64,000 bases of DNA from Podarcis melisellensis (GCA_964234715.1 OZ174281.1), one strand, 5' to 3'; positions 1,843-62,343 are shown, numbered from the stretch's first letter. Numbers and translations are program-made. Notes: generated by a model from the sequence alone, not told the origin.

Positions 1843-4800
1843 GTATTTATTACCTGAAATACTAGGTGTCTTTAAAACATTTTAAACTATCAGATAACTG
1901 TTTTGTTCACTGATTATTGATGTTTATTAAGAAAGGAGCGCTGAGTCCAGTAGCCCTTATTTCAGCATTATGCAAATGGTGCAAACTTTCATAATCAGAT
2001 GATCCAGAAGTCGACTGATAATGGTTGACTTAATAGAGGTTAACCAATATCATTGTTGTTGTTGTTATTATTTATTAAATTTATTTACTGTACTTCTTCC
2101 AAGGATCACAGTGCAGTGAAACTAGACATTTTCATGATTGTCTTGCTTTGAGATTCAATTCATGACTTATTATGTTTTTATGATTACTTTGGGGAAGGCC
2201 TTCAAAATATAAGCAATGACTTAAGTAGAAAGTGAAGGACAGAGCTTACTAGGTTTATTTTATTTTTTAAAAACTGCCCTTGTGCTTATACTTCTGCAGC
2301 TGATAACCATGCCTATCCACCTGTTTTAAAGGCAAAAGATTTATACAATATGAAGAGAAAACAGGCTATCTGTTGACTCACCTATGATATGCTCCTTGGT
2401 AACCTGTGCAAGAGGACTGACTGCATATAATGCCTTGCTTTGTCAGTGAACCTATTTCACACTGGACAGCCAGAAACCTCATCAGAATCTTGGGCAAGGG
2501 GGAGGAATTGGCATCGCTTTAGAGCATAATTACTGAATTAATGTAGAGCGAAAAATTTCACAGTACACTCTGTTGGATTTTTATTTGGATATGGATAGTA
2601 GAACATCTGATCCAGGTGCTTCTTTGTTATACTGAGTCACAGATGTTGACTTAGAGGAGGGGTTGCTAACCTTTTGGGACCAGTAGACATGGGCATTGCT
2701 GGGGGCAGGAACAGGGAGGGACAGCTGCCCCATTAAATAAAAATACATAGCTAACTGAGGTTCTGCCTCCCTAACAAAAGGCCTGCCCCTCCTAAGAAAA
2801 ATCCTGGCTACACCCATGCCAGTGGATATGTTTTGCCACAAAATGGCTGCCATAGGCGTATGGTGTAACACAAAATAAGAGAACATGGTCAGCCTCCTCA
2901 ACCTCATGTTTATCATGGGAAGATCTGTGTCCTGCTGGTCTTGATTGTGGAGATGCAACTTTTAAAGGCACAAAACCCCCATTTCCCCCAGTGTCAATTC
3001 TAAACCAAAGCCAAGGCTGTTATTTTGTACCCACTTACCTGGGAGTAAGTCCCATTAAGCACAGAGACTACTTCTGAAGGAGGTATGGGTATTGTTGAGC
3101 TGTAAGTTAAGTATACATTGAATTCTTAATGAGTGCCTGGAGTGCTCCTACACTGCAAGAGACACGCCTAAGCCACTTTCCAAAGTGTTCATGTTTTGCA
3201 TTTGCCATATGGAAAAGGGATTATTTAGCTTCCACCCACGCTTACTGTGTAGTAGTAGTTGCAGAAAATAAACTCTAGACAGTACCTGATCGCAAATGAA
3301 CTATCCATAGGATATATGTATCCTGGTTGCCATGGGAAAAGGTGGAAAACTAGGGAGATTCCAAGGACTACTCTAAATAAGACAGATGCAGGAATAATTC
3401 ACTAAAAGGGAGAAGAAAACAGAAGTTCTTTAGGATCCGAGGTGTCCAAACAGCACTGACTTTCCTTGCTGACTGCAAATGACAGGCTGAAGCAACCAAC
3501 CTAGCTCATTGCACAAAAATTGTGTAAAAGGTACCTGCATGTACCTGTTATTATTTATTAATTTTGTATATACCCACAGATCTCCCGGTTCTCCAGTTAA
3601 ATTTTTCTCCCTTTAGGTTAATTCTTTATTAAGTTAGGCTGAACTTGGAATTGGTCGCAACCAGTTAAAATTTACAAACATTTCCAGACATGATTTTCAG
3701 TGTTGTTTGTTCTCATAAGCAGCATGGGTTCATTGGGTTTCTTTTTAAACAGCTGATGACATAAAGCCATGCCCACGCTGTGCTGCTTATATAATAAAGA
3801 TGAATGATGGAAGCTGCAATCATATGACATGTGCGGTCTGTGGATGTGAATTCTGTTGGCTATGCATGAAGGAGATTTCAGACTTGCATTATTTAAGGTA
3901 TGTATTGAAAGAGTTCATATACCTCACTTCATGTTGTACCCCACTAATTAACAGCAGCCTAGGCTATAAATCCTTTAAAAGGAAGGAAGGAAGGAAGGAA
4001 GGAAGGAAGGAAGGAAGGAAGGAAGGAAGGAAGGAAGGAAGGAACAAGTGACATTTGTTTTGATCATGCACATTTGATGTAGTCTTGAGGTAGGGACGCG
4101 GGTGGCGCTGTGGGTAAAACCTCAGTGCCTAGGACTTGCCGATCGTATGGTCGGCGGTTTGAATCCCCACGGCGGGGTGAGCTCCCGTCTTTCGGTCCCA
4201 GCTCCTGCCCACCTAGCAGTTCGAAAGCACCCCTAAGTGCAAGTAGATAAATAGGTACCGCTTTATAGCAGGAAGGTAAACGGCGTTTCCATGTGCTGCG
4301 CTGGTGCTGGCTCGCCAGAGCAGCTTCGTCACGCTGGCCACGTGACCCGGAAGTCTTAAGTGAAATGAGCGCACAACCCTAGAGTCGGACACGACTGACC
4401 CATACGGGGAGGGGTACCTTTACCTTTACCTTAGTTTGAGGTGGAATTCTATTTTCATACCTGGTTAGATTTTTAATATATATAAAACTGGTTTGAGAGG
4501 GAGTTTACTGATATTAGATAAGGCAGGACTTTCCATTGCATGGGTGTCAACTACAGGAAGTGCCTTGCTTTCTATAGCCTGGTGCACACGGAAGCTCTCT
4601 TCAGAATATGATAAAGTGACGGGGAAACCCCAGGACTTACTGTGGGAGATTAGGAAATGGACTTCCCGCAGTAAATTTCACTAAGAAAGATAGCAATGGA
4701 ATCAAATCTATCACCACAATCCCCGCCTCCCATCATATGTCCTACATGCTTGGAGAAGCCTTTTGCAAAGAGAACATTCTGTTTGTTATTGTGTCTAGCT

Positions 4801-6582
4801 GTGTTCAGAACAAGTGGGACAGCTGCTGCCATAAAACTTCATCAACAGGCCTTAGAGCTTTTGCCTAAGTACAACACACAATTCCTAGAGAAAGACAAAA
4901 CTTGTCAGATGTTTCAGTTAAATTTGAGGAAGGTAAATTTTCCCCATTCATAGTAAAGAGGTTCATTTAAAACGTAGGTGGAGAAACTTTGTTCCAAATC
5001 CCGAGTTGCCCATTTTAGCATCAGCCCTGGGAAGAGCCATGATCTGATGAAACCAAAAAGAAAATGCACTGGATATAAATGGTGTGCTGCTGGTCTGGTA
5101 CTATATTAGTTTCAGTTTACTCTCTCTACAACCTGAAACGTTACATTACGTTAACACTTTTAGCAGGATTTCAGATTCAAGCATTCTTGCTCTCTCTGTT
5201 AGAGAATGTTATTATAAAACTGACTATTCTGTGAGTCATAAGTTTGCCTTACTTATGGAAAATTTCTTCAAATAGTCCATCAGGTTGTACATTCTGGGGG
5301 AAAAAACCATGGAGTCGGAAGAAGAAAATACTGTGGCAACTAGGGACGCTTGTGGGTGCACCTGTGGGAATCGCCTTAATAGCAGGCATTGCTATTCCAG
5401 CTATGATTATTGGAATACCTGTATATGTGGGACGTAAGGTAAGGTGACTGTGTGTTTAGAGTCTTCAGTTACATAGGACTTGGATACTTTTGTACACATG
5501 TTTAAGGCTTGTTCACACAGCAACATGTTGTACTTCAAGATATTGTAGTAATATATATATATAGAGAGAGAGACTGCCTTTAGTCAACTTACATAAATAA
5601 ATGTACCTAGAACCAGGAAAAAAAGCATAATTTTTTTAAAAAAACACTTAAAAAAAAGTATAATGCAGCAGCATAGAATTAAATAAGCTAGTAATATTTG
5701 CAAACAGTTTCTGTCTATAAATCTGCGGCATTAAGACGCTTCATTTAAGAAAAGGCAGCTCAAAATAAAAAAATATATATATTCTTGCAGGAAATACTTC
5801 TCAGTTCTGTGATGTGCAATGCATTCTAAAATGCTCTTTTTCTTAAAGATTCACAATCGCTATGAAGGTAAAGACATTTCAAAGCACAAGAGGAACTTGG
5901 CCATTGCAGGTGGCGTAACCTTGTCTGTAATTGTTTCACCGGTTGTAGCTGCAGTAACTGTTGGTAAGTAAAGGTGCAGGTAAAAATCAGGAAAACCCTT
6001 TCAGAATTAGTTATTTATACTGATTTATAAAAAGCTTTGTTTACACATTGCTGTAAAGGTGGGGCACAAAGAATTGATATTATCGATGCTGCTGGGCATT
6101 CATTGTACAGCTCTGAACCCTATTTTCCAAAAATGCATTACTAGCTTATAAAAGTATGTGGAGCTGAAACAATCCCTGTGCCTAAGCACTCATCCCAATT
6201 ATTGTAGGTTTGGTAATATTCTCTCTGAAAACCAGGGCCTCAGTACAAGATACCTGTGTGTGTTCAGATATGTATGTAAGCCCTTGGGTCAAGCCCCATC
6301 AATTCCAAGGGAAGAACCACACCCAGTGGTACAAAACAGTGTACATACAGACCTGATTCATCAGTTGAAATGAAAGGAAGAGGCATTAGAAGCAGAGGAT
6401 CTCAGTGTCACATAGAAACTCCTGGCATCAGGAGGTGTTTATAGGATTAAGGGGAGTGTCTTTTTCATTTATAGTAGTAATTCAGCTTTTATTTTCTTTG
6501 CCACTTTTTGTGATAGCCTATTAAATTGTATAATAAGGAGATATATAGTGATCTCTCTCTCGTGTGTGTGTGTGAGAGAGAA

Positions 6583-6623
<41 letters not shown>

Positions 6624-9600
6624 GATATCACACAACATGACAACTCTGTACTGATTATAGTGTTCTACATTTTTATTGCAGGAATTGGTGTCCCGATTAT
6701 GTTGGCCTATGTCTATGGAGTAGTTCCTATCTCTCTCTGCCGAAGCGGAGGTTGCGGTGTATCGGCTGGCAATGGAAAGGGTGTCAGAATAGAATTTGAT
6801 GATGAAAATGATATAACTGTTGGTGGAACAAATGCAGCAGTAGGTAAGGAAAGTCTGTTCCAGTCTCTTCTCAATGTCTTCAGTTGATGGATTGAGTTGA
6901 TAGATGATATACATGCTCTCTTCTTGCAGACATTGTAGTTATATCAGTCTAGGACCAGCACTAACCCAGATTCTTGGGACACATGGAAAAGCTTAGCAGC
7001 AACCCTAGTAGTCACTGTTCCAGCTTTTCCAGAGCAATGTCTTTCTCTACATTGAAGGAGTTTCAGTGAAATGCTTTTCCTATTAATTTTAAGTACTACC
7101 CTTTTCATATTTAGATCTTTCTTCTTTGGCAGTCACTCGTAGTTGAGTAAGATTATCTTCCATAAACACGGTTTTAAGAATGAGTCCGTAAGAGACTGTG
7201 GAGGCCAATTCTGGATCCACACGTCCTTCCACAGTGGGGACATTGGTTTCCGGGCGGGAGTTTATCACGGTGTGGATTTGCCAACGGTGCTTTCCTCTTA
7301 GCACGTTTCTCCCTTACGTCCCGAGTTTAAGTGTCTTTACCTTTACCTTTCATATTTAGATACCACATCAGTAGCAGAGGCACGTAATAACCCCAGCATA
7401 GGGGAAGAAAGTGTTGGAGGATTGACTGGAAGCCTGAGTGCAAGTGGTAGCCATATGGACAGAATGGGAGCAATTCGAGACAATCTGAGCGAAACTGCCA
7501 GCACTATGGCCCTGGCTGGAGCCAGTATAACAGGGAGTCTGTCGGGAAGTGCAATGGTCAACTGCTTTAACAGGTAAGATAATTTGTGTCCAAAGTTCAG
7601 TTTTTGTGTCTGCTTCTGTAAACAAACTACAGTTAGCTCTGAGGGGATCAACTTTTTCGTGTTGTACTTTCTGATGTGATACTTTTTTATTTTGATCTCA
7701 TGTAGTCTAAAAACAGTTACTTTGTTTACATGGATTAAAGAAGCTTTCTGATCCCTGATTACTCAATTGCAGTTAAAGGAAGGGAAGGAAGTTCAGGTGC
7801 TACAAATTACATAGGCCACTTCGAAAGTTTCTGGCAACAGAATTTAGTGCAGTGTGTTTGGTGTGTCAAAACTGTTGCTAAATGGGGGGCTTTGAGAGAA
7901 GATTTTTTTCTGAAATGAGTTGGGCTCATAATAAATGATATTTTCTGCCCCTCTTTTTTTGGCCAAATAGTGCTATTCTTCTGTAGTTGGTTTTCTGTCT
8001 CAACTACAGTGAGCAATGTACCAAAACAGCATAAGGAGTTCTACCTTCTACCATGTGTATGGCTTCAGGGGCAACAGGAAAATATTGTCTAAACACGGGT
8101 CTTTTGTAGTCTGGGAAGCTTTTGTACTGACAGTAGCCAACTAGATAATAGAATCATAGTATTGTAGAGTTGGAAAGGACCGTGAGGTTCATATCGTCCA
8201 ACCCATTGTGGGGCTCAAACCCACGACCCTGAGATTAAGAGTCTCATTCTCTAGCCACATGCCTGTGAGTAGCTTGCAAGCAGAAGCTTCTAAAAGACTC
8301 CCAAGTGAAATGAAAGCTGAAAGATAATAAGAGAACTAAAATTGAATTTCTCCCCAAGGTTGGAAGTTCAAGCAGACGTGCAGAAGGAAAGGTGCAGTTT
8401 GAGTGGAGAGTCGGGCACCGTTAGTTTAGGAACAGTTAGTGACAATGCCAGCACCAAAGCGATGGCTGGATCCATTTTAAATTCATATATCCCATTGGAC
8501 AGGTAAGAATTAAGTAGTGGAAATGTGAATAGAAATGCAGCTTATTCAATTCTGTTAATTGAACGATGTCGTATTCAATATGCATACCTTGTAGTAGTCT
8601 GCAAAAGTAGCATTAATGAATTCCCCTTCTTTGAAATTTCTGGTATGATTGTTGTTGGATGTAACAATATTTTTTATCTATTATCAAATTTCTGCCCCAC
8701 CCTTCTGAAGTTCAGTCCTTCAGAGCCAGGGAGGTGGTGGGATTTTTAGTTTCTTCTTGGTTTGAGCTGCTATTACTTAAATATAATTTTCTTGACCTGC
8801 ACATACAAAACCTTGTTAAATTCATTTTTTAAAAAAGCTTTGGATCTCTGCTTTTATGAAGTAACTTTGTCAATATGATTTCTTGCTAGAACTATCCAAA
8901 ATCCTCACTGTCCACTTAGTGCATCTAATAAAAGCTTGAAATAAAAGCTCCTTGAAAATAAAAGCTCTTGGCGGAATTTTTTTCCTGGCTTGGTTTTAAA
9001 AATTATATTTGCACATTTCTTTTTTATTGAGAAACTGGTGTAAGATGTCTTTATATCTCCCCACCTCCCACAGTTTGCAAAGCTTGGTAAAGGTAGATCC
9101 AGCTTGGCTATCCTGTGAATTTCAGACATTCCATTCACAGAAAGGACTCAGGTCTTGTAGAGACTTCCTGCTGGACAGGAGCAGTGATTTCCACCAATTC
9201 TTCCTGCAGCCCCCCCCCCCATGCCTCCAGGTAGTCCTCTGACTCTTAAACTGCTTTTGGCAGGCTGCAGGAGGAAGGAGAATTGCTGAAAATTGCCTCT
9301 CCTTTTCCATTTGGCATGTCTGGATCCAACCCTGTATGGTTTTCTTTCTGGATATCTTTTACAAATGGTTGATGGGCTTCTGGAATGTATGCTTGTGGAT
9401 CCATGGCACATTAAAGTTAGGAAGAAGTTCTCATAATGTGCTTTTAGATATGTGTACTAAAAACAGTGGAAAGTCCTATGACACTTCAAGGACTAAAATG
9501 GATTGTGACAAGAACTTCCAAGGCAAAACCCTACTGCAACTGATCCATGAAGTGAACAGTGAAGATAATGGATTATGTGCATAGGTCCAGTGAGAAATCT

Positions 9601-10668
9601 GATATGTTAATTATTTTCTTTTAAAGCAGAGTTTCAACACATAAATCAGTTGCAGTTCATAAGGCTTTATATCTGCAGTATTTTTAAAAAAGAAACTAAA
9701 CTTATATTTGAATAATAGTGGCTCATTTTTCCTTAAAGGGATGGGTAGAGATAAATAGAGGCAATGTTTCAGCACCTGAAATAGTTGTGTTTATATTGTA
9801 TTACATCATTTTATTAAGGGCAATATTAGCAGAATGAGTCACCAGGCTTTTAGTGCCATTTTTTCCTAAAGCTATACTGCATTGTGTTAAAATGCTTTTA
9901 AATTGCATTTTTCCATTTTTAATTTCACAAATTGAAACATTTTTAAAATGAATACTTCTCTCTTCTCCCCCTTCTAGAGATAGCAGCAGTATGGAGGTAC
10001 AAGTAGACATTGAATCAAAGCCCACAAAATTCAGACACAACAGTGGGAGCAGTAGTGTTGACGATGGTAGTTCTGCAGGTCAAAGTAACGCTGGTTGTTC
10101 GTCAGCCTGCTTGTCAGAAAACAAATCTAGTGCCACCAAGTGGTCCAAAGATGCATCGGCAGGGAAAAAATGCAAAGGTAAACTAAGAAAAAAGAGTAGC
10201 ATGAAGATAAATGAGACCAGAGAGGACATGGATGCTCAGTTATTAGAGCAACAAAGCACAAACTCCAGTGAATTTGACTCTCCCTCCCTCAGTGACAGTA
10301 TCCCATCTGTAGCTGATTCCCACTCAAGTCATTTTTCTGAGTTTAGTTGCTCTGATATGGAGAGTATGAAAACCTCATGTAGCCATGGTTCCAGCGATTA
10401 TCATACCCGGTTTACCACGGTTAACATTCTCCCAGAGGTAGAAAATGACCGTTTAGAAAACTCTCCACACCAAAGTGGCAATTCGTTGCTGATTCCAGCT
10501 GCTCCAAACTCAGAGGCTCCACAGCTGAGTTACATTGCTGAAGAATGTGTTTATAATGGGACTTCAAGTGTTGCAGATATGGGTACTGGTGAAACACTGA
10601 AAGAAGCAAACAACAACCATTCACAGCACGCTGTGGAGTTAAATGCTGCAATTCAGACTGAGATTTAA
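1634..10668 (+). CDS. RNF19A: RBR E3 ubiquitin ligase RNF19A (Dorfin), 3' part; 8 coding exons in the window, 5' exons upstream of it
   Basis: Exons 1634-1842, 3753-3897, 5276-5438, 5849-5963, 6682-6843, 7360-7573, 8359-8502 and 9978-10668 join in frame with GT-AG introns. They encode the IBR ([24 protein letters not shown]), RING2 (CPRC...[19 protein letters not shown]), two hydrophobic TM segments and a Ser-rich tail ending AIQTEI*. Confidence 0.97.
2688..2818. mobile_element. hAT-type MITE (CATGGGC..GCC TIR family; relatives near 43537-43638 and 43744-43888)
   Basis: TIRs catgggcattgct and ggctacacccatg; 8-bp TSD ccagtaga/ccagtgga. Confidence 0.65.
3753..3897 (+). CDS. RNF19A: RNF19A coding exon (RING2, catalytic Cys)
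   Basis: aaacag|CT GAT GAC ... TTA AG|gtatgt; [26 protein letters not shown]. Confidence 0.95.
3979..4044. repeat. (GGAA)n microsatellite
   Basis: Perfect tetranucleotide run. Confidence 0.95.
4093..4431 (+). mobile_element. Sauria SINE (lacertid POM-like), near full length
   Basis: tRNA-like head GGGACGCGGGTGGCGCTGTGGG with a B-box-like GGTTTGAATCC; BovB-related 3' part (AGAGTCGGACACGACTGA); (ACCTTT)n tail; TSD approximately tagt(c)ttgaggt. Confidence 0.9.
5276..5438 (+). CDS. RNF19A: RNF19A coding exon (TM1)
   Basis: aaatag|T CCA TCA ... CGT AAG|gtaagg; [37 protein letters not shown]. Confidence 0.95.
5849..5963 (+). CDS. RNF19A: RNF19A coding exon (start of TM2)
   Basis: ttaaag|ATT CAC AAT ... 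GTT G|gtaagt; [38 protein letters not shown]. Confidence 0.95.
6552..6625. repeat. Compound (CT)(GT)(GA)(GACA) microsatellite
   Basis: Directly visible. Confidence 0.85.
6682..6843 (+). CDS. RNF19A: RNF19A coding exon
   Basis: ttgcag|GA ATT GGT ... GTA G|gtaagg; [25 protein letters not shown]...EFDDEND. Confidence 0.95.
7117..7347 (-). mobile_element. 5'-truncated RTE-clade LINE, antisense to RNF19A
   Basis: The minus strand encodes REKRAKRK...[22 protein letters not shown], an RTE C-terminal zinc finger, followed by a short 3'UTR and a GAA-rich tail. 14-bp TSD tttcatatttagat at 7103-7116 and 7348-7361. A related copy lies at 62117-62343. Confidence 0.88.
7360..7573 (+). CDS. RNF19A: RNF19A coding exon (acceptor lies within an RTE target-site duplication)
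   Basis: atttag|AT ACC ACA ... AAC AG|gtaaga; [20 protein letters not shown]...AMVNCFNR. Confidence 0.93.
8146..8255 (-). mobile_element. tRNA-Lys(CTT)-derived SINE with CR1-like 3' tail
   Basis: Minus strand GAGACTCTTAATCTCAGGGTCGTGGGTTTGAGCCCCAC, then GGTCCTTTCCAACTCTAC...ATGATTCTAT (CR1-type tail). Confidence 0.7.
8359..8502 (+). CDS. RNF19A: RNF19A coding exon
   Basis: cccaag|G TTG GAA ... GAC AG|gtaaga; [24 protein letters not shown]...SYIPLD. Confidence 0.95.
9978..10668 (+). CDS. RNF19A: RNF19A last coding exon
   Basis: ttctag|A GAT AGC AGC AGT ATG, in frame with ORF 9991..10668 ending AIQTEI*. Confidence 0.95.
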
Positions 10669-18460: not shown

Positions 18461-21400
18461 CTGAAAAGGGGGAAATAATGTGTGGTTAGCATTTATAAAT
18501 ACTATCTGCAAATGGTATTTGTCTAAATGCCTAGTAAAAGCTAGTATTTCATAAACATGCACATTTTCAGAAATAATTGACAGCAAATGCCATAATTCCT
18601 TACCTTAAACCTTTCTGCTCTACTCAGGTGGACAAGATGCTGGTACACCAGTCCAGGGTCTTGACAAAATACATCCGACTGCAGGGCTTGGATAAAGAGC
18701 AGAAAAATGTCTCCTTCTAGTTTGTTGCTTAAAAGGGCTGGTAAATCTTTTGGCTCAATCGCTGTCAAGAGCTCTGCACAAGCAGCGATGTCCTTATTGG
18801 CATTCACAACATTTATAATCTGACCAAATTCATAGGCATTAGATGGCTTTGAAATAATGAGTTTTTCTGAACTATTCATTGGCACTGCGTCAGTCTCTCC
18901 TTTAGCGCTGTCATGATTTGATGTAGCCTTCTCTGAAGTACAGGTCACTCTAGCTTCCTCTTCCTCATTCACCTTCACAAAGAAATAACCACATGCCCAG
19001 TTGGTTTTGATATATGTATGCAACATGTAACATTTCATAATTGTGATAAGCAGGAGCACAGAGAAATTATTATTGCAGCCTGAGTAAAACTTATGAAAAT
19101 CTTTCTCCCAAGAGACATTTTAATTCTGTCCTAGACACCATCAAAATGATATATTCAATGTCTGACCCTGTTCACATGTGCAGCTGCCAGATTATAACAT
19201 AGGTGAGCTTGATTGTGCTGCCTCCATCCCTCTCAGTGGGGTGCTGACTGCATGGTAAAAAAGGATGTAAAAAATTATGCCTGGCTTCACCTATTTGCTC
19301 ATGTTCATCCTCTGCATGCCCATGCCGTGCAGGTGTCTTATATGTTTAACTGACTTCCACATAGTTGGCTGCACATATGATGGAGTGTCTGCGATCAGAG
19401 CACCATATACTAAAAGCAGTAAACAAACTGGTGCACTTACAAAATCAGAGAGGTTGGGTGAGGGAGGGACTATTAAGAGTTTCAATGTTAACTCCACCAT
19501 CAAAAAACTTTTGTTCAGAACCGAGAGACTGGGCTGAGTCTAGGATAAGAGTTACCAACCTTTGGAGGCCTGTGGGCACATCTGCAAACCAGGGAAACTG
19601 CCATGGGCATCACACCCACATTCTACTAGCTACAACAGAATGCTACTTTCAGACCTACCATATTGGCCTGGATATAAGCCTCACTTTTTTCCCAAATTCC
19701 GACCGTGAAAAGTTAATAGTGTGGCTTATATTTGCGACCTTATGGTATGCATCCAGAGAGCGGCAAAGCAGTGCCCGTCCTGTGTGCAGTCCCCCATCCT
19801 CTTCCCCTAATGCTGGGAAGGGAGAGAGTGAGAAAGGGGAAAGGTCACTGGCAAAGCAGCACAGCTCCGCCGCCGCCCAGTATGCAGTCAGGAACACCTT
19901 ATATTTTGGTGCTTTTCGTCCCCACTCCCTCCAATTTTAAAGGTGCAGCTTATATTTGGGCCAATACAGTAATTTCAGTGGAGGAGAGGAGACCCTGCAG
20001 ATACCAGGGAAGCCCTTGGTGATCACGTGTGCACCTGCAAAGCAATGTTGGTGGCCCTTGATCCAGGGCATTTCCCTCTAGCTTCCAACCTGCCCACTTG
20101 CTGATTTGGGCTTTTGCTGTCCCTCAATCACTCGACAATAATCTTGACTCAACGGCAAGTGCATAACAACGTTGATAGTTAAAGTGCAAGTAAACACTAA
20201 CGTGCGACTCATTCCTATTTTAGAGCTTTAGAGTTTTTCATCTTTTAATCTGTTAGGATTCTCTGTTTTAGATACATTATAAAATTAAATAATAATAATA
20301 AAGCTTCACAGAAAATGAAAATGGGGAATGAAATTAAACCAGAGATTAATGAAATGGAAATTAGGATCAGAAATTATATAGAAGATGACAGAGAACTGGC
20401 AGGACAGAGATGAAACTATGGCAAAACTTAGAAGGAACAACTGATGAAATGGAAGTACCCACTATACAAGTGTCTGGAGAAATGAAGGTAAGATTTTGGA
20501 AAACAAAAATGACATAAATGAAGAGAGATCTGGATAATCTGACATCAATGGAATTGAGAGAGAAAGAATTTGACCTATGACTTGGAGTGATCCTAGGGAT
20601 AAAGCAATTAAATCTCTGGCATTCTTTTTGGAAAGAGAAACACAAAAGGAAGAGTCAGTACTAGATAAGGCTGAAAAAACATGGCAAATACAACAGGAAG
20701 TGGAAATTGAAGATACAGAACTGGGTGTGGGCCAATGGATACATAATAAAAGGATTTTGGAATATTATCTCAATATACAATCACAGCAGATAGATTCTTA
20801 TATGCACAAAGGAGGAAATTGGAGGCAAAATTTAAACATTTAATTAGAGGGGGGGAACATTCTTGGCATTTATCATTAATTGGGAACCCCTTTTTGAGTG
20901 AAAAGAAAAATGAACACATAGTTAATATACCACTCTTCATCATAACATCTCAGGGTGATTCAATTTTCACATTTATAGTTTTTTTAAAGAAAATTTGCCA
21001 AGCACATAAAGCTGAATGCAAACAAGTTGTGAGTTACCTGTAATATAGAAAAGGAAGCAATGGGACTAAGAGGGCATTTTAAATTTAAATATAGCAACAA
21101 GATTTTAAGCATTACAACTCTTTGGCTGTAATAAGTAACATTCTAAACTACCTTACTTTAGTACTATAGTGGGATTCTCTTTATGGCTGCTGTATAATAA
21201 GCAACAAGTAAGCCAAAACTATTTATTTTAATACGGTGTTTACTATGTGATAATCAGCTGGTGGCTAGTCACATTTGTTTATAACATCAAACAAAACAGG
21301 TTCCCATTAATAAAACACAAGTCCAGAAGACCTTAGTGGTCTTAGCCTTCCACTATTTTCTCAGAAAAGAATCCCCACAACCAGCAAGTCTACAACTGCC

Positions 21401-61517: not shown

Positions 61518-62116
61518 AATAGAATCATAGAATTGTAGAGTTAGAAGGTATCTCAAGGATCATCTAGTCCAGTGTTTCCCAACCTTGGGTCTCCAGCTCT
61601 TTTCAGACTACAATTCCCATCATCCCTGACCACTGGTCTAGCTAGCTAGGGATGATGGGAGTTGTAGTCCGAAAGCAGCTGAAGACCCAACATTGGGAAA
61701 CACTGATCTAGTCCAATCCCCTGCAATGCAGGAAACACCATCCAACCTCCGCTTAAAAACCTTTAAGGAAGGCAAGTCCATCACCTTTGGAGGGAGTCCA
61801 TTCCACTGTTGAACAACTCTGTCAGAAAGCTCTTCCTAATAAGTTTAGTTGGAGTATCCTTTCTTGTAGTTTGAATCCATTGGTTCAGGTCCTACCATTT
61901 GAAGCAGGCAAAAACAAGCTTGTTCCATCTTCCATGTGACAGCCCTTGAAATATTTGAAGATGGCTATCATATCTCCTTTCAGTTTCCTCTTGACAACTC
62001 CTTCAACCATTCTTCATAAGGTTTCTAGTCCCTTGATCTTCTTGATTGCCTTCCTCTGCACGTGTTCCAGCTTGTCAGCATCTTCCTTAAATTGTGGTGC
62101 CCAGAATTGGACACAG
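61518..62116 (-). mobile_element. CR1 LINE 3' fragment
   Basis: Tail repeat (ATTCTATG) read as atagaatcatagaat on the plus strand; ORF2 C-terminal sequence [17 protein letters not shown] on the minus strand. Confidence 0.8.
61570..61705. mobile_element. hAT MITE nested in CR1
   Basis: TIRs CAGTGTTTCCCAA and TTGGGAAACACTG; perfect 8-bp TSD atctagtc. Confidence 0.9.
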
Positions 62117-62343
62117 TCTTCTTTCTTTGGCAATCACTCGTAGCTGAGTAAGATTGTCTTCCATGAACACAGTATTGTCTTTAAGTGACTGTGGAGGCCA
62201 ATTCTGGATCCACACGTCCTTCCACAGCGGGGACACAGGTATCAGAGCAGAAGTTGATTACTGGTGAGGATTTCCCAAATGTGTCTTTCTCTTAGCTATT
62301 TTTCCCTTTCGTCCTGAGTTTGTGTTTCTTCAAAGCCCTTGAC
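62117..62343 (-). mobile_element. RTE-clade LINE 3' fragment
   Basis: Shares GACTGTGGAGGCCAATTCTGGATCCACACGTCCTTCCACAG with 7117-7347; [18 protein letters not shown] finger. Confidence 0.82.

Follow-up and report, generated by a model that had tools for sequence, protein, structure and literature searches.

A retroelement appears to have struck RNF19A in the first bases of one of its coding exons and to have been tolerated there, in the 64,000-nucleotide (nt) stretch of the Podarcis melisellensis genome analysed here (GCA_964234715.1 OZ174281.1; the whole stretch is called the window, and positions are counted from its first letter). We consider it very probable that the 3' end of an RTE-like long interspersed nuclear element (LINE) was inserted antisense to the gene by target-primed reverse transcription, that the target-site duplication (TSD) and the junction of the insert together rebuilt the 3' splice site of a 214-nt exon, and that the rebuilt AG, at 7358-7359, is the productive one.

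A 14-nt repeat at both edges of the insert

The sequence TTTCATATTTAGAT is present twice in the window, at 7103-7116 and at 7348-7361, and no third match was found there even when one mismatch was allowed, against a chance expectation of 0.13. The repeat is exactly 14 nt long, as the flanking bases differ both on the left (T versus C) and on the right (C versus A), and it consists of the last 12 bases of an intron and the first 2 bases of the 214-nt RNF19A exon. The insert between the two copies measures 231 nt, and the intron grows with it from 271 to 516 nt. Read from AG 7358-7359, the exon begins G/AT ACC ACA.. (a slash marks a splice boundary) and yields the conserved RNF19A protein sequence, while the choice of AG 7113-7114 adds 245 nt and leads to a TGA at 7144-7146. 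Two exon junctions follow the 214-nt exon (7573 to ~8357 and 8503 to ~9985); the TGA lies 427 nt ahead of the first, where the rule for alternative splicing coupled to nonsense-mediated decay (AS-NMD) calls for >~50 nt, and the second lies beyond it. The features of the gene around the insert are as follows.

6682-6843, plus strand: upstream RNF19A coding exon, ending with the G of a split Asp codon (GCA GTA G/GTAAGG)
6844-6845, plus strand: donor GT of this exon
6844-7114, plus strand: pre-insertion intron of 271 nt, with a native TTAAT (7083-7087), a native pyrimidine tract and a final AG at 7113-7114
7103-7116, plus strand: upstream copy of the putative TSD, TTTCATATTTAGAT; T7116 may instead be LINE tail
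7115-7146, plus strand: reading from AG 7113-7114, (G)AT CTT ... AGT TGA, that is 10 residues and then the stop TGA 7144-7146, read directly from the sequence
7130-7132, plus strand: CAG, a third, cryptic acceptor after the pyrimidine run TCTTTCTTCTTT (the antisense of an AAG-type tail), leading to the same stop
7336-7353, plus strand: tandem hexamers TTTACC TTTACC TTTCAT at the 5' junction of the LINE, the last of which opens the right-hand 14-mer
7348-7361, plus strand: downstream copy of the putative TSD, whose AG 7358-7359 is the predicted productive acceptor
7360-7573, plus strand: RNF19A coding exon of 214 nt, starting in a split Asp (D) codon and closing in a split (R) codon, with length and junction as in orthologues free of the transposable element

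A first-pass annotation of this DNA, made from the sequence alone, had placed the 14-mer at the same two positions and had described it as the intron end plus 2 exon bases; all of its coordinates hold, and direct reading confirms both this composition and the 245-nt addition with its stop at 7144-7146. It had further stated that the downstream copy restores the normal exon, which agrees with the conserved reading and with the identical exon length in the element-free orthologues. We regard the 14-mer as a TSD, as the same annotation did, because the exact repeat stands at the two edges of the insert and nowhere else, and because its left edge coincides with the end of the tail of the LINE family; its behaviour as a LINE target-site duplication is thus supported, with 0.13 matches expected by chance in the whole window.

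The insert is a LINE 3' fragment

Homology to the LINE starts at 7116/7117 and ends near 7339, and the tail (..GCCAAAGAAGAAAG) terminates at 7117. The parts of the element, and its second copy in the window, are listed below.

7117-7339, minus strand: 3' fragment of an RTE-like LINE, truncated at its 5' end and lying antisense to RNF19A
7117-7173, minus strand: 3' untranslated region (UTR) of the LINE, 57 nt, ending in a short-repeat tail of AAG/GAA type
7174-7326, minus strand: end of the second open reading frame (ORF2) of the LINE, 50 codons with the stop TAA at 7174-7176 and a C2H2-like finger below the Pfam threshold
62117-62330, minus strand: second copy of the same LINE 3' end, extending further 5' than the RNF19A copy

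The alignment of the second copy to the insert also begins at 7116/7117, with an identity of 79% over the blastn match and of 83% over the shared alignment columns. This copy adjoins a repeat-like stretch at 61800-62116 (..TTAAATTGTGGTGCCCAGAATTGGACACAG) that resembles an interspersed repeat common in reptiles. The tail of the element ends in AAAGAAGAAAG, and similar tails are found in four other copies. Three further copies in public contigs (L006-L008) are 87-88% identical, share the same 3' end and run further 5' into a stop-free ORF2 C-terminus of 128 amino acids (aa). These three are short contigs of ERZ27260045, from a collection of metagenome assemblies of the European Nucleotide Archive (ENA), and the presence of lizard-type LINE copies in it suggests host DNA in the sample. 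A search with the minus-strand ORF of the insert returned other LINE copies only, none of which was the upstream junction in a relative. We also considered a short interspersed element (SINE), as two copies seemed to share one end; this was rejected, and the RNF19A copy is taken as a 5'-truncated fragment, because other copies continue 5' into ORF2. The finger in the ORF2 end on the minus strand has the spacing C-x2-C-x12-H-x3-H, and a Pfam scan of the insert peptides gave sub-threshold zf-C2H2 matches only. With ORF2 end, stop, 57-nt 3' UTR and tail all on the minus strand, the fragment is the antisense LINE 3' end that had been proposed at first reading.

Searched against 1.84 billion representative proteins, the 128-aa ORF2 end, taken from a longer copy, gave 2921 relatives at E<=1e-3. 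It matches the extreme C-terminus of two long relatives, P0179 (1050 aa) and P0192 (1057 aa), in which Exo_endo_phos begins around residue 8 (~8) and RVT_1 lies mid-protein; their identity to the C-terminal query is only ~46%, and the architecture with both domains is known from these homologues and not from the fragment itself. A full relative (L009/L010) has a single ORF of 1057 aa with no upstream ORF >58 aa, and the 3' UTR of L010, ~50 nt long, is followed by CAAG/TAAG repeats. RTE-1 has an ORF of 1066 aa, a tiny possible ORF1 and an unusually short 3' UTR of short repeats, and the RTE clade in general has a single ORF of ~1000-1066 aa with apurinic/apyrimidinic (AP) endonuclease and reverse transcriptase, no sizeable ORF1, and a notably short 3' UTR that consists for the most part of short AT-rich repeats (PMC1291365). 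The relatives of our element thus resemble the RTE LINEs (RTE-1 of C. elegans, Bov-B of reptiles and ruminants) in their single ~1050-aa AP-endonuclease and reverse-transcriptase ORF, in the very short 3' UTR ending in short repeats, and in 5'-truncated copies flanked by duplications. From this architecture (single ORF, short 3' UTR, short-repeat tail) it is plausible that the fragment is of RTE type. It differs in the C2H2-like finger of its ORF2 end, and its membership of the clade, suggested by architecture, is putative. Reptilian Bov-B has a (CAA)n tail (PMC13295347), whereas that of the insert is of AAG/GAA type, and the RNF19A site has no TTT run ~10 nt upstream of the nick; as in Bov-B, the duplication on the LINE strand starts with an A preceded by a T, a single case to which we attach little weight. 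The RTE label of the first-pass annotation therefore fits as far as the architecture of the relatives goes, and the tail departs from the (CAA)n of reptilian Bov-B.

Junctions and proposed mechanism of insertion

At the 5' junction, where the consensus of the other copies continues ..CTTCAAAGCCC, the RNF19A copy reads ..CTTTACCTTTACC. The bases at 7340-7347 match neither the LINE family nor the target, and a filler of 6-8 nt is thus placed at this junction. An extension of the LINE homology into the right-hand 14-mer was considered and rejected, as the aligned columns there match at only 6/14. At the other end T7116 is ambiguous between target and tail, other LINE copies ending ..AAGA. Since T7116 may belong to the LINE tail, the first nick would lie either 1 or 2 nt inside the exon; the insertion point had been put at 2 nt, of which the location within the exon stands and the distance could be one base shorter. 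As a side observation, the array TTTACC TTTACC TTT at 7336-7353 repeats the hexamer of the tail described for Sauria SINEs, (ACCTTT)n (PMC13295347); in RNF19A it stands where an antisense LINE fragment has its 5' end, and the likeness may be coincidence or slippage.

The events may be reconstructed as follows. A 5'-truncated LINE 3' end of ~223 nt, with 6-8 nt of filler, would have been inserted antisense by target-primed reverse transcription. As the cDNA strand is the plus strand, the first nick would have been made in the sense strand of the gene, at ..TTTAGAT^ACC.. or one base earlier, that is 1-2 nt inside the exon, and the second within the intron, 13-14 nt upstream of it; this order is the one of standard target-primed reverse transcription. 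Fill-in would then have copied both the 12 bases that close the intron and the 2 that open the exon. Lying directly against the intact exon, the downstream copy would form, with the TTTACC TTTACC junction ahead of it, a complete and productive acceptor. The upstream copy would retain the native branch point and the native pyrimidine tract and might act as a decoy. Use of the decoy AG or of the cryptic CAG at 7130-7132 would lead to the stop at 7144-7146, far upstream of two junctions, and degradation of such transcripts would be expected.

Two acceptors with a common core

From -12 to +2 the two acceptors do not differ; what sets them apart is the sequence ahead of this core. The upstream one has a yUnAy motif, TTAAT, with A7086 lying 27 nt before the AG, and 14/18 pyrimidines at -20..-3; that it keeps its native pyrimidine tract, as previously claimed, is in line with these values and with the presence of the native TTAAT. 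The downstream one has TTTAC motifs with A7339 and A7345 at 19 and 13 nt before the AG, 15/18 pyrimidines at -20..-3, and no AG between 7331 and 7358. Its AG lies within the duplicated target (7358-7359 within 7348-7361), and its yUnAy motifs all lie inside the junction hexamers. By this composition the TSD gave the AG and the last 12 bases of the intron, whereas the motifs that resemble branch points, and a large part of the pyrimidine tract, come from the 5' junction of the insert. The statement that the TSD rebuilt the acceptor is thus right for the AG and the last 12 bases, and has to be amended for these insert-derived parts.

We infer that splicing would go mainly to AG 7358-7359, with A7339 or A7345 as the putative branch point. 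Depending on the site, the exon is 214 nt (downstream AG) or 459 nt (upstream AG) long, and exon definition favours the downstream site with its shorter exon, without excluding the upstream one. A further candidate is created by the LINE tail, whose antisense, TCTTTCTTCTTTGGCAG (7117-7132), places the cryptic acceptor 18 nt after the upstream AG and in the same frame. RNA folding of 7040-7400 was no more stable than that of shuffled sequences (z=0.55), and since this fold is ordinary there is no sign of a masked upstream acceptor. Recursive splicing at the upstream AG was considered and rejected, as no GT follows the AG.

A shared insertion followed by exons under selection

The same insertion was found in an independent assembly of a relative (L004), a contig retrieved by searching with the antisense ORF that the gene caller of the public collection places across the 214-nt exon. 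It is 95.9% identical to the window over 7308-8869, and in it the exon follows directly on the right end of the LINE fragment. Because the two assemblies have this insert-exon junction in common, the insertion is not an error of the window assembly and appears to predate the split of two species that differ by ~4% in their introns. The join in L004 reads ..GTGTCTTTACC/TTTAGATACC.., the 13 bases at 7342-7354 (TTTACCTTTCATA) being missing. The simplest reading is that they were lost in that lineage by a deletion between TTTA repeats; this is preferred because a gain of 13 nt would need seven new chance matches to the upstream copy. The missing bases belong to the pyrimidine tract and to the right-hand duplication, so that at this place (L004:1500-1515, window 7342-7354) the acceptor of L004 is almost wholly insert-derived, ..GTCTTTACCTTTAG/AT.

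In the two exons downstream of the insert, the window and L004 differ at 2/361 sites (one synonymous, one Asn>Ser at codon 7482-7484), and in the introns at 44/1148 (exons versus introns, Fisher p=6e-4). This supports the view that the coding sequence after the insert is still under purifying selection, and that the rescue works and is old. As the downstream exons differ far less than the introns, splicing to the downstream AG would yield a working mRNA, although this argument is indirect. The proposal that the insertion was neutralised by its own TSD holds in this light: a relative ~4% diverged shares it, and the exons that follow it bear the mark of purifying selection.

Three distant orthologues (L002, L003 and L005; exon identity 87-88%) are without this LINE. 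In each, the exon is likewise 214 nt long, the acceptor is single (..TCTAG/ATACC, ..CATAG/ATACT) and the corresponding 14-mer of that orthologue occurs once. The local comparisons covered the sequence from 6850 on. Under the TSD reading, the single-copy site before insertion would be ..TTTCATATTTAG/ATACC..

Several points weigh against this account. The introns of the three orthologues are too distant to align with the window, and none of them is an empty site in the strict sense. The L004 contig ends inside the insert, so that it covers the right-hand junction only, and this one contig keeps only TTTAGAT of the right-hand 14-mer. The productive use of AG 7358-7359 is read from protein conservation and selection, and the RTE assignment from architecture rather than from a reverse-transcriptase tree.

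Alternative explanations

Short tandem repeats (TTTACC TTTACC TTTCAT) make up the right-hand junction, and L004 is without TTTACCTTTCATA, which indicates an unstable region; one might thus suppose that the 14-nt repeat is no TSD, having arisen by a chance match or by slippage near the TTTACC/TTTCAT hexamers, and that the LINE is simply intronic. We hold this to be very improbable. The repeat stands exactly at both edges of a retroelement fragment, with the end of the family's tail at the left one; the expectation for chance matches is well below one over the whole window; slippage cannot account for TTTCATA, 7 further bases in which the right-hand copy agrees with the upstream one; and even the state of L004 still holds a 7-nt duplication, TTTAGAT, that includes the AG. 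Less credible still is the idea that the insertion arose in assembly, or that it is a rare variant carried by the sequenced individual and not fixed, given the junction common to the window and the independent assembly of the ~4% diverged relative. Less directly, the share of the sampled words present in 14 genome-size sequencing runs, which carry five organism labels, is 0.57-0.92, more than the ceiling of roughly 0.7 to be expected without the insert when divergence is allowed for.

A different question is whether the pair of acceptors has become a working switch, selected as such, in which the upstream AG or the CAG at 7130-7132 is used to an appreciable and regulated extent and leads a share of the RNF19A transcripts to nonsense-mediated decay or gives a truncated protein with the RBR and transmembrane (TM) parts. 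The upstream AG retains its native TTAAT and pyrimidine tract along with the core that it has in common with the used site, the stop at 7144-7146 is far upstream of two later junctions, and the upstream 14-mer is intact in spite of the age of the insertion, which two species ~4% diverged have in common. At this divergence, however, an intact 14-mer is not unlikely by chance, the RNA of the region has no unusual structure, and with 13 nt of the other copy gone in L004, the two copies have not been preserved intact as a unit. Moreover, the transcriptome-size runs (n=6) hold 0.38-0.49 of the sampled words, close to the ~0.37 of all 31-mers expected from the two exons alone; ~0.65 would be expected if the 245-nt extension were common, although this is weak evidence, the words being only a sample. 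We therefore think a selected switch unlikely, and we give an equally low chance to the use of the leftover ancestral acceptor, with the cryptic CAG, at a meaningful and perhaps tissue-dependent level. The AS-NMD switch and the truncated RBR and TM protein, both raised at first reading, are thus conjecture. If such a switch did operate, the LINE insertion would have given a conserved E3 ligase gene a new dosage valve coupled to nonsense-mediated decay, kept in a group of lizards.

Comparison with known systems

Among known systems, introners are transposon-derived introns that can co-opt a splice site from the target-site duplication, IE1 of Micromonas being an example (PMC11282704). As in RNF19A, the element lands in coding sequence, a short duplication supplies the 3' AG, the element is spliced out and the frame is kept. 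Most of them, however, are short DNA transposons; their duplications measure 3 nt, and the introns that they make in protists, algae and tunicates are new. In RNF19A, by contrast, a LINE fragment with a 14-nt TSD has lengthened an existing vertebrate intron by way of a copied acceptor core, with splicing that is predicted. The principle is therefore already known from introners, and RNF19A is a tolerated LINE version of it, common to two species, with an existing vertebrate intron lengthened. In NF1, de novo Alu insertions have been described at the boundary of intron 14 with its exon (c.1642-1_1642; PMC3219598). They too were insertions of the type made by the L1 endonuclease, at an acceptor, in either orientation and with target-site duplications; they were found through splicing defects and are pathogenic, whereas the insertion in RNF19A is tolerated and common to two species.

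AS-NMD poison 3' splice sites are defined by measured use and usually show strong conservation. The upstream acceptor of RNF19A resembles them in that its use would bring a stop well before later junctions. In the exonisation of antisense Alu elements, the antisense poly(A) supplies the pyrimidine tract; in the same way the antisense AAG-type tail, TCTTTCTTCTTT, followed by CAG (7117-7132), would be a ready-made cryptic acceptor. The element is another one, however, the tract is short, and the cryptic site in RNF19A is a candidate.

To our knowledge, the rescue of an acceptor by a TSD has seldom been documented for a LINE in a vertebrate gene. The locus offers a clean natural example of a retroelement that hits the first bases of a coding exon of a conserved gene and is yet tolerated. 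Two acceptors that are the same from -12 to +2 and differ in branch point, pyrimidine tract and exon context also make a natural minigene for the study of 3' splice-site choice, to which the 13-nt loss in L004 adds a second natural variant. Beyond that, the case is of modest interest, an anecdote rather than a new mechanism.

Gene identity and neighbourhood

RNF19A lies on the plus strand. The series of its exons, seen as stop-free segments, runs from those for IBR/RING2 up to a final one that closes with ..AIQTEI at 10668. Its identification as RNF19A (Dorfin) follows from the RBR-type exons, two hydrophobic segments, a long C-terminal tail (..AIQTEI) and named orthologues; the last exon has 82% identity with a protein from a bird that bears the name RNF19A-like. 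Each exon was searched singly rather than as part of a joined spliced model, and the IBR-type matches fall below the Pfam threshold for this reason. In the public contig search there was no record of the exact product of the last-exon ORF, and when close relatives were sought through that ORF the best match was 89% identical, on a contig without the upstream part.

Downstream of RNF19A, on the opposite strand, an exon with an RPAP3_C domain (E 1.2e-14) lies at 18544-19059 (minus strand), and L001 has the same neighbour. This gene is probably SPAG1, arranged tail to tail with RNF19A. Within RNF19A, two intron microsatellites lie beside exons, at 3960-4050 and 6576-6625, one of (AAGG)n type that reads KEGRKEGR.. 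and one of (CAGA)n type that reads DRQTDRQT..; both lengthen the stop-free segments near exons and could mislead ORF-based exon calls.

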